A model generated the notes under the pieces. The model was not told the origin of the DNA. It saw only the letters and a list, made by a program, of their open reading frames with translations, and searched no databases. Of a stretch of 64,000 nt of DNA, positions 49,701 to 52,700 are shown one piece after another. Within the stretch, counting starts at the first letter, position 1; each line of letters starts with the position of its first letter. Source of the stretch: Mobula birostris (Eukaryota); the NCBI RefSeq assembly GCF_030028105.1, contig NC_092377.1, forward strand, positions 137,869,736-137,933,735, given 5' to 3'. A program made the translations under genes and the position numbers.

Positions 49701-52700
49701 TCTATGTGTTTGCTTCTTACTGATCCCCAAAAATAAATACATGTATTTGTTTAGTGTTTTATAAAATCATTGCAATTTCCTCTTTGATAATTGCATATTG
49801 TGGCAACGTCCTCGGCCCCAGGAAGGTAGAAAGGTTGAATAAGTGTAGCAAATGTATCGGATCTAATACGTTTCAGATTAATCTGTGTTGGTACAATTAG
49901 GAAACTGGAGTAAATACAGCTGTGAGGAAAATTAAATCTGAATTATCACAAGGAGTGTTCATCGCTGGCAGAATTTCAATTAGCAACATTTGGGCTGGGC
50001 TCACTTCATTGATCCCATTCTAAAGAAATATTTGAAATAACCCCTTTTTTTAAAAACTGATATTTTAAAAATTCCTTCATAGAAAGAAATGGTATATTGT
50101 TCTTGAAATGCCTTTCACTTTTCTAAGTGGTTTGTGTTCAATTGCATTCATCAGGGAGAAAGAGATAGGCCATGATGTTGACCTTCTCATAACCCATCCA
50201 GAAGAAGGCAAAGAAGAGGGTCTTCTTTGCCAAGTGGTGAATTGGATGACCACCGAGGTATGACAGTTATATTTTACTAATATTGGTAATGTCCAAAAAA
50301 AAAACAAAGAACACAGGGTAAGATGTTAATATCCCTTGTGCCAATGGGTTGTGAGCACTTGCTCGAGATTGCCTTGATGTTGGGGGTGGCACAAGGTTGA
50401 CAAGCAGGGATTTTCAAGTAGACACCCTCCTTCCTGGATGTTTCAAGAGATAACTTTGACTTAAACCACCTTGCCTTAGAACCGTATCAAACCATTGTGA
50501 TGTGCATTAGCTGGATTTATGAGGGTGAGATTCAAAACTCTGTGACAAACGATAGTCCCAAAGCTCAAAGAAAGCATGCTGAGAAGTAAGATGAAAGTCT
50601 TAAGGCTGAGGGAGGTCAAAGCTAAAAGAGAGAGGCAGTTATAAAATTCTGTCACAGATTATTAATCCTCTCATTCTCCTTGAAGTCCCTATGGGAGCAT
50701 GTTTTAGTTGGGAAGGTTAATTTGTGGAAAGTTAGACCTCAGATTAGTCCTTGAGTACTTCTCATTTTTGTTTTATTTCCTTGATGCTTTCTGCCTTGGT
50801 GTGACTAGATAATATCACTGAACCTTCATCATTTAGAGTAGTAACTAGGTGGGAATGTAATTTTATTCCTATCCACCTCCTAATTTTTGATCAGCTTTAT
50901 CTTTCTTTATTCTGCATGTTTAGAAGTTATTCATCAAATCGTAGCTAAAAAAAAACGATTACATTTTTGTGCTGTGTATTCCAGCCGACAGATCGGCATA
51001 CTATTTTCAGGGTAGCAAGGAACAGATTTGTAAATTGAAGACATGTATCCAGAAAGTTGTGGGTGCTTCAGTGAACGTTTGTAAAGGGTAGGTTTGTAAA
51101 TCAGAAAATACCTGTATATCTTGTCACCATATTGTTGACGCCTTGATTTTTAATATTTCTTGTGTGCTTGTCTATAATTTAGCATTAAGATTTGTTTTGG
51201 AAGATTTGTAGCAATACCTTGTAAGGCAAAGTTTATTATGAAAGTGTTCTTTAAGCATTACTGACAGTTTAGGAAGTGTTTTTGTTTTGTGACAGCAATG
51301 TTTTTAATGACTAAGCCAAATGTTCTCCATGGTAAAGATCTAACAAAACCTTACATTCTGTTTTGCAATTATTTCAGGGTCTTATATTGTATGGTGACAT
51401 CACAGGCAGCAGTCACAAAGAGAGAAGCAAGGAGCCTGAGATCTTTGATCACTTTGAAAAATGTCTTTCTATCTTCGGGCTGAAGAAAGAGTTGGTAAAT
51501 AATTTAGAATCTAAGAACCTGAGGAACTCTGACTCTTTGGCTGGAGACGAGACACAGGGAATTGGTCTTGCTGACCATAAAGAGGCTGCTCAACAGGTGA
51601 TGGTGGCTGCAGCGTGCAATAAAGACCGGAAGGCTGTGAGAGTGGACTTGGTTGTTGTTCCCTACAGTCAGTATGCTTATGCCTTGTTGGGATGGACAGG
51701 TTCAAGGGTAAGTATAAGATGGAACAGTTTAATTTGGACAATATAAACAAAAATTCTTTTAGATTGATCAATACCTAAAAGAACATTTTGGAACAATTAC
51801 CACTGTCAGAATTGACAGACTTTTAAATTAAAACCTTAACTTTGTCAGAATATTGATGAAGGCTGTTCAGGCACTGGTAGAAAGAGGAAGGGAGTTAACA
51901 TTTCAGGATGAAGACCCTTCATCAATATTGTGACAAATATTAGCGTTTGAAAAGGAATCAGAAGGTTTTAACTTAAAAGTCTTGTCAATTCATTTTTCTC
52001 ATTTTCTATGTCATTTATTTTTAAAAATTTCTTCTACTGTTAGATTTCTAGTCTGTTTAGTTGAAGATGCTTAGTGACCGACTGTGTAATAGTGTTTGTA
52101 CAGTGACATTGGACCTATCTAAGTGTCACCTGCTCTCCTCAGTATTGCTTGTAGTGCTTCTAGTTCTCCAGTTTGAGAGCTCCCACCCTCAGCTGTAAGG
52201 TGCTGTTAGAGCTGTTTCTCTTGTACAATGGAACTTCCAATACATAAACCCTACTCACTTGGTCATTTTCATCAAGCCGGCTCTTTGTTATACACTATGT
52301 GCCTTTTCCCAGGCGCGCATTATGATGCACTTCAAGGCAGCGCCTATGTTATGGATGTTCTGGATCTTCTGTTAGCAGAGAGGCCATGGATTGCCTGTGA
52401 GGTGCTGGCTGAGAAGAGCCGCCTGTGCAGGATCCTCTGACTTTGACACTGGTTTTCTGTCGATACTGATGTCTTTATAGAAGTCAGCAGATTAGACAGC
52501 GATCAGCATAGCAGTCATCTCTACTTGCCACAGTGTGGGCGATGGTGTAATCTGACAAGTACTGGTATGAGAACGGGTACTAGTCCTTGAACCTGGTACA
52601 TTGCCATGTGGTTACATGATTGACTCTGATAGACCAAAGTGTTGGATATGACACACAATGTCAGACGAAGCTATAGGAGGGCACATTCCAACTGGAAAGA

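Follow-up and report, generated by a model that had tools for sequence, protein, structure and literature searches.

The DNA polymerase mu gene (POLM) of the giant manta ray has a lysine, shared by all sampled sharks and rays, where the human enzyme has Arg387

In human DNA polymerase mu (Pol mu), Arg387 contacts the primer or template (PMC7508851), brakes primer translocation and limits untemplated nucleotide addition (PMC3592450). In work by Andrade et al. 2009, as cited in PMC4081086 and PMC3592450, the R387K mutant of the human enzyme shows terminal transferase activity up to 100-fold higher (PMC4081086) and permits expansions that are impossible for the wild type (PMC3592450). The reverse change in terminal deoxynucleotidyl transferase (TdT, the product of DNTT), K403R, shifts behaviour to templated synthesis; in the same enzyme, three-residue deletions in loop 1 result in polymerase-like behaviour and D473A, by which the Asp of the mini-loop is lost, gives a templated enzyme (PMC2724280). 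Two determinants, SD1 and SD2, were described by Romain et al. (PMC2724280): SD1 is QKC in TdT versus ERS in mammalian Pol mu, and SD2 is DNH in TdT. Moreover, Leu398 in loop 1 and Phe405 in the palm of TdT form a wedge on the single-stranded DNA primer, and Aspergillus fumigatus PolX1, which has a swapped Phe/Leu wedge, extends primers without a template (PMC12828229). Finally, F389L in human Pol mu abolishes terminal transferase activity and NHEJ (non-homologous end joining) of incompatible ends, as does F389G even in combination with R387K (PMC4081086). Here we report the POLM gene of the giant manta ray (Mobula birostris), found in a stretch of 64,000 nucleotides of contig NC_092377.1 (hereafter the window, to which all positions refer), whose product, Pol mu, carries lysine (Lys390) at the position of human Arg387 and TdT Lys403.

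We compared the residues at this brake position and found that Lys390 is not peculiar to the manta gene: judging from the aligned sequences, it is the clade-wide state of elasmobranch Pol mu, present in all sharks and rays sampled (17 out of 17 named species). Arg was found in 137 other Pol mu-like rows aligned at this position, and also in Callorhinchus, two lampreys, two hagfishes, amphioxus and crinoids, while no Lys was detected among the Pol mu sequences of the bony vertebrates, chimaera and cyclostomes sampled. All 143 DNTT-like sequences had Lys, which was also present in the single-copy homologues of molluscs, nemerteans, arthropods and a tunicate; cnidarian homologues had His. A few other states were observed: two salamanders (Pleurodeles and Ambystoma) had Ser in their Pol mu, the anglerfish Haplophryne mollis had Thr and the python Liasis had His. 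The manta enzyme departs from the family-typical Arg387 state (the ERS or ERC block), and Arg387 is a residue state described for the Pol mu family, not a condition of orthology. The clade-wide Lys of elasmobranchs seems to have gone unremarked, given that the searched literature, of incomplete coverage, held nothing relevant on elasmobranch Pol mu.

The block surrounding the brake residue, written with the last residue of loop 1 before it and the residue at the Phe389 position after it, reads F-DHFEKC-L in batoid Pol mu (with F at the last position in the skate), F-D[HRS]F[AT]KC-[FY] in sharks, F-DHFERC-F in the chimaera, [ML]-D[HR]FERC-F in bony vertebrates, M-DAFERS-F in mammals, M-D[QHR]FERC-F in lamprey and hagfish and [ML]-DHF[QE]KC-F in TdT. 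In the invertebrates the corresponding stretch is DHFEK[WF] in molluscs and nemerteans, DNFEKCF in the scorpion, DHFEKCY in the tunicate and DHFERCF in amphioxus. The manta SD1 tripeptide is EKC, which matches K and C of the TdT tripeptide but not Q, and its SD2 is SSH versus DNH in TdT; the Glu is also found in some fish and shark TdTs, and the Cys in most non-mammalian Pol mu.

An earlier sequence-only reading of positions 51378–51476 (+) had proposed a mosaic, possibly near-ancestral Pol mu/TdT enzyme. Most of what it described was recovered: DHFEKC by translation, the GHDVD, ITHP, GWTGSR, FERDLRRYA and SSH motifs at the positions mapped in Table 1, the reference states (DAFERS in primate and mouse Pol mu, DHFQKC in mammalian TdT), the effect of R387K on untemplated addition (up to 100-fold; PMC4081086), the protein length of 528 aa and the identity of the gene as a Pol mu with Lys at the brake position. 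The 17 residues given for loop 1 stand if the Gly after LILY is left out, and become 18 if it is counted. The mosaic was not supported by the comparison. His and Cys of DHFEKC, where mammalian Pol mu has Ala and Ser, are, as far as the alignment tells, normal states of non-mammalian Pol mu, and only the Lys is unusual; GWTGSR was also found in the Pol mu of turtle, ostrich and a lizard (Sceloporus), and FERDLRR[YFW]A in that of fishes (eel, sturgeon). The characters other than Lys that look TdT-like are shared old characters lost in mammals and not imports from TdT. In addition, identity calculated per exon and per sub-segment, as a test for a mosaic or gene conversion, revealed no TdT-like block in manta Pol mu, and the 12 residues running from DHFEKC into strand beta-4 were 69% identical to bony-vertebrate Pol mu versus 57–61% to DNTT.

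The history of the K/R site was judged by parsimony counts on a tree of 69 sequences, which needs at least six changes at this position. A scenario in which the ancestor of gnathostome Pol mu had Arg, and the stems of DNTT and of the elasmobranchs changed separately from Arg to Lys, was one step shorter than a scenario of retained Lys; both would be equally long if DNTT were really the sister group of chondrichthyan POLM. A secondary origin of the elasmobranch Lys is more likely, by this one-step preference only, because cyclostomes, amphioxus, crinoids, the chimaera and bony-vertebrate Pol mu all have Arg. The near-ancestral state suggested earlier is thus unsupported by the counts, yet not disproved by them.

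The manta POLM is an ordinary gene that was annotated before this analysis. We used the conserved exon at 44809–44979 to fetch family members and then searched the window with shark Pol mu using tblastn, which resulted in a gene model of 11 exons on the + strand encoding 528 aa (Table 1). The model protein was 100% identical over its full length to RefSeq XP_072122499.1 of assembly GCA_030028105.1, which is named 'DNA-directed DNA/RNA polymerase mu isoform X1 [Mobula birostris]'. All acceptors are AG and all donors are GT, with the sole exception of a GC donor after exon 6. The brake residue and loop 1 lie within exon 9, which starts directly 3' of an AG acceptor and stays open through RVDLVV and GWTGSR until the GT donor at 51708 is reached. 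In 4 public runs of 3 related organisms, spliced RNA contigs joined 50257 to 51378 and 51707 to 54464 with GT..AG borders, spanned exon 9 uninterrupted with no internal joint and showed no variant at 51447–51467; exon 9 was confirmed as a real transcribed coding exon and not a chance open reading frame (ORF). As no joint interrupts these contigs inside exon 9, the long insert that follows IFGLKK is translated sequence and not an intron. A candidate intron starting after KKEL (GTAAAT at 51495) was accordingly ruled out, and the insert is kept in the shark orthologues.

Pfam recovered the BRCT, HHH_8, DNA_pol_lambd_f, DNA_pol_B_palm and DNA_pol_B_thumb domains in the 528-aa protein, all over the cut-offs; the loop-1 exon by itself gave no Pfam match because it is too short. 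The three catalytic Asp residues (335, 337 and 452), their preceding His and the steric-gate motif GW are all intact, and His334, Asp335, Asp337, Asp386, Arg450, Asp452, Gly467 and Trp468 were among the invariant columns of the 69-sequence alignment. Human and mouse Pol mu (PDB 4M04, 2IHM and 9CQ3) are alike in domain order, catalytic triad, preceding His, GW motif, flexible loop 1 and NSH-type mini-loop (SSH in the manta), with 48–50% identity in the core and a TM score of about 0.95. The manta enzyme differs from human Pol mu by Lys390 for Arg387, Leu392 for Phe389 and Phe385 for Met at the loop-1 wedge, and from both mammalian enzymes by a loop 1 shorter by 2 residues and a loop 2 of 49 versus 18 residues. 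The thumb mini-loop, LSSHSLFD, is of Pol mu type, as Pol mu has [NST][SN]H at this place versus DNH in all DNTT.

Loop 1 consisted of 18 residues in batoid Pol mu, 19 in sharks, 17–25 in bony vertebrates and 20 in primates, while TdT had a fixed loop of 21 residues, highly conserved across all TdTs, to which the elasmobranch loop bears no resemblance. Loop 2, as defined in PMC7508851, was 45–49 residues long in all elasmobranch Pol mu, 40 in the chimaera, 10–45 in bony vertebrates and 18 in a primate; crystallographers of the human enzyme delete it as flexible and non-conserved. In the AlphaFold2 model of manta Pol mu, loop 2 has a predicted helix at residues 399–412, followed by a stretch of low confidence at 411–442 (pLDDT below 50). 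The confidence in loop 1 was low in manta Pol mu (means of 62–67 over blocks of 10 residues) and in manta DNTT (51–88) and did not discriminate between them, and in a Foldseek search of the model against the PDB, Pol mu and TdT matched equally (TM 0.93–0.97).

We obtained two maximum likelihood trees (LG+C20; 54 and 69 sequences) with invertebrate outgroups. In both, manta POLM was sister to the POLM of Mobula hypostoma, within batoids and within a chondrichthyan POLM clade (100/98), and lay outside DNTT. DNTT formed a clade with 100/100 support on a long stem (0.46–0.47), with its own chondrichthyan branch that included the manta DNTT, and the cyclostome genes fell outside the chondrichthyan POLM, bony POLM and DNTT clades (93/92). 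The separate DNTT of M. birostris, XP_072095857.1, is on a different contig; hence the two checks proposed beforehand, a tree and a search for a separate DNTT, both agreed with a Pol mu. The annotated manta DNTT has 472 aa versus 525 aa in other stingrays and is without the N-terminal part and without a Pfam BRCT match, its catalytic motifs (GHDVD, DHFQKCF and DNH) being intact; it is probably an incomplete gene model.

That the gene is actually a TdT, or a TdT-derived paralogue misannotated as POLM, is a reading we regard as highly improbable and, as far as the present data go, already refuted. In its favour, the loop-1 exon alone scored 35.7 bits with mouse TdT and 24–26 bits with mammalian Pol mu in a PDB search, the catalytic core scored 362 bits with mouse Pol mu and a nearly equal 360 bits with mouse TdT, and chondrichthyan POLM and DNTT were weakly grouped in the best tree. 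We rejected the loop-1 exon score as evidence for TdT, since the low score with mammalian Pol mu reflects the long branch of the mammalian sequences; the other exons and the full length did not favour TdT. Scores with Pol mu were the higher ones for exon 7 and for the full-length protein, and the gene lies outside the DNTT clade that holds the manta's own DNTT. Overall identity was equal, about 50–52% to shark TdT and 51–54% to bony-vertebrate Pol mu. DNTT proteins, including XP_072095857.1, share with manta Pol mu the Lys at position 403, DHF, Cys404, GWTGSR and FERDLRRYA, with about 50% identity and a TM score of about 0.94, but manta Pol mu has ITHP and not I[ST][CST]P, SSH and not DNH, Leu and not Phe405, Glu versus Gln before the Lys (Glu also occurs in some fish TdTs), and a loop 1 of unrelated sequence. 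The manta gene is not evidence for a second TdT.

With the gene taken as a Pol mu, the effect of Lys390 has to be weighed. The substitution may be neutral or compensated, with little net effect, so that the enzyme behaves like any Pol mu, and we give this slightly less than an even chance. The six or more changes at the site, occupied by K, R, H, S or T depending on the lineage (S in salamanders, H in python and cnidarians, T in anglerfish), speak for it, together with the recurrent Leu at the Phe389 position, a natural state of lacertids, snakes, several teleosts and two rodents which indicates that the strand tolerates change. This natural Leu is therefore compatible with a working Pol mu. 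The uniform Lys of the elasmobranchs next to the 137 Pol mu-like rows with Arg points, however, to lineage-specific constraint and not to drift, and the conservative R387K change has a large effect in the human mutant data (PMC4081086).

It is also possible, though rather unlikely in our judgement, that Lys390 would give markedly more untemplated addition than in mammalian Pol mu; by extension, N-like nucleotides may then be added at antigen-receptor or other NHEJ junctions. The human R387K data (up to 100-fold terminal transferase and extra expansions; PMC4081086, PMC3592450), the opposite outcome of K403R in TdT (PMC2724280), the Lys of all DNTT-like sequences and its fixation in the named elasmobranch species, which suggests constraint, are consistent with such an effect. 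So is the ray pair Phe385/Leu392, the same swapped wedge as in the template-free extender PolX1 (PMC12828229). This pair (i, i+7) was present in 5 out of 6 batoid genera sampled, but not in the skate, and sharks have Phe...Phe. PolX1 has its Phe (loop 1) and Leu (palm) seven residues apart, as in rays, but it is a fungal enzyme without the His before the catalytic Asp, and the likeness concerns two residues only and is taken from the text of the paper, not from an alignment. On the other side, Leu392 equals the human F389L state that abolishes terminal transferase activity (PMC4081086), loop 1 has 18 residues versus 21, when three-residue deletions there make TdT polymerase-like, and the SSH mini-loop is without the Asp whose loss makes TdT templated (PMC2724280). 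Furthermore, the Lys does not by itself mark out a TdT-type enzyme, since single-copy homologues of molluscs, nemerteans, arthropods and tunicates have it too, and the manta genome contains a canonical DNTT. R387K was made in the laboratory as a single mutation of the human enzyme, which has Phe389, and it shares with the natural ray enzyme the Lys state at the brake; the 100-fold effect is not simply transferable, because the ray enzyme also differs in loop 1 and has Leu in place of Phe389.

We consider it very probable that the product of the gene holding exon 9 works like other Pol mu, with a clade-wide elasmobranch Lys390 and a brake that may be looser. The BRCT domain would bring manta Pol mu to broken DNA ends, as inferred from the established biology of Pol mu, and the enzyme would fill short gaps during NHEJ. 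Synthesis would be mainly template-reading, with some nucleotide addition across a discontinuous template, the enzyme being template-capable and not TdT-like. Compared with mammalian Pol mu, the brake may be less tight, and the effect of Lys390 would be modulated by Leu392, by Phe385 at the wedge position and by a loop 1 shorter by two to three residues. Strict template independence is very unlikely in our judgement, because loop 1 is short and not TdT-like, the mini-loop is SSH and a separate DNTT exists. The net untemplated activity of manta Pol mu is not deducible from sequence, and a raised level is plausible.

Several points weigh against this interpretation. In the best tree chondrichthyan POLM was weakly joined with DNTT (75/44), and POLM monophyly costs only 1.84 log-likelihood units (p-AU 0.41), so that it is neither rejected nor established; the three clades of chondrichthyan POLM, bony POLM and DNTT branch as a trichotomy. 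The basis of the orthology to bony-vertebrate POLM consists of names, motifs and the tree, and no other gene was found in the 64 kb of the window or at less than 10 kb from POLM. The searched literature held no enzymatic data for any elasmobranch Pol mu, and the RNA runs used for POLM splicing carry no tissue label.

Table 1. Exons, loops, motifs and key codons of manta POLM, with positions in the window.
Feature	Position	Strand	Evidence or content
POLM exon 1	28589..28797	+	ATG at 28589, GT donor, tblastn; first part of BRCT domain
POLM exon 2	38244..38424	+	AG acceptor, GT donor, tblastn; remainder of BRCT (Pfam match residues 39–88)
POLM exon 3	44292..44387	+	tblastn; residues 131–162, linker
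POLM exon 4	44809..44979	+	tblastn; 8-kDa / HHH domain
POLM exon 5	45197..45268	+	tblastn
POLM exon 6	46552..46672	+	tblastn; fingers
POLM exon 7	48728..48860	+	tblastn; palm begins; RNA loose end at 50153 matches exon 7 end
POLM exon 8	50155..50257	+	GHDVD (His334, catalytic Asp335 and Asp337), ITHP; RNA joint 50257/51378 in 4 runs
GHDVD	50168..50182	+	
ITHP	50189..50200	+	
POLM exon 9	51378..51707	+	loop 1, FDHFEKCL, loop 2, RVD (catalytic Asp452), GWTGSR; RNA-covered
Loop 1	51393..51446	+	residues 368–385, 18 aa; last residue Phe385 aligns with TdT Leu398
DHFEKC	51447..51464	+	within exon 9
Lys390 codon AAA	51459..51461	+	aligns with human Pol mu Arg387, TdT Lys403
Leu392 codon CTT	51465..51467	+	aligns with human Pol mu Phe389, TdT Phe405
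Loop 2	51483..51629	+	residues 398–446, 49 aa; variable, between palm strands 4 and 5
GWTGSR	51690..51707	+	
POLM exon 10	54464..54547	+	FERDLRRYA helix, thumb mini-loop SSH; RNA joint 51707/54464
FERDLRRYA	54467..54493	+	
SSH	54518..54526	+	
POLM exon 11	56979..57065	+	C-terminus ...ERNA and stop codon; RNA loose end 54547 matches exon 11 start

Regarding the splicing of the gene, intron 6 is a GC-AG pair with the donor GCAAGA at 46673. Two shorter RefSeq isoforms are explained by the skipping of single exons: X2 (496 aa) lacks exactly exon 3, and X3 (471 aa) lacks exactly exon 4 (residues 163–219, part of the 8-kDa domain). The RNA contigs of two runs also contained a low-depth alternative joint from 53442 to 54462 (GT..AG), which leads from 52861–53442 in intron 9 to the acceptor of exon 10 and hints at either a minor isoform that includes a cryptic exon or RNA whose processing was incomplete.

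The 28 kb located 5' of POLM (viewed over 1–32000) consist nearly entirely of the remains of retrotransposons, and both strands carry reverse-transcriptase-like ORFs (for example 863–2050, 13046–13468 and 23026–24180 on the − strand). A GC-rich block at 27767–27951, about 0.6–0.8 kb upstream of the POLM ATG, contains 2.2 copies of an 85-bp unit with 98% identity that bears GGAAGTG / CTTCCG (ETS-like) motifs, and probably belongs to the promoter or 5' untranslated region of POLM. Intron 10 includes a 27-bp minisatellite at 55456–55717 (9.7 copies, 89% identity), which yields long spurious ORFs in several frames. Finally, Rfam at the gathering threshold gave no RNA family match anywhere in the window.

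Taken at its furthest, the elasmobranch enzyme would be a natural 'R387K' Pol mu whose brake has been loosened since the elasmobranch stem, with the Phe/Leu wedge of rays keeping the grip on the single-stranded primer, and with untemplated addition beside TdT at NHEJ junctions, those of V(D)J included; we offer this as a speculation that is rather unlikely to hold. The residue that, as mutagenesis has shown, tips human Pol mu between accurate gap filling and untemplated addition occurs naturally in the 'TdT state' across one ancient vertebrate clade, and the same residue is in the 'Pol mu state' in the chimaera, cyclostomes and bony vertebrates, which offers enzymologists a natural experiment. 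The SD1 determinant of 2009, QKC versus ERS in few sequences, is reduced to one K/R difference when non-mammals are added, and even this difference fails in elasmobranchs and invertebrates. If the activity is really raised, it would have a bearing on junctional diversity in cartilaginous fishes.

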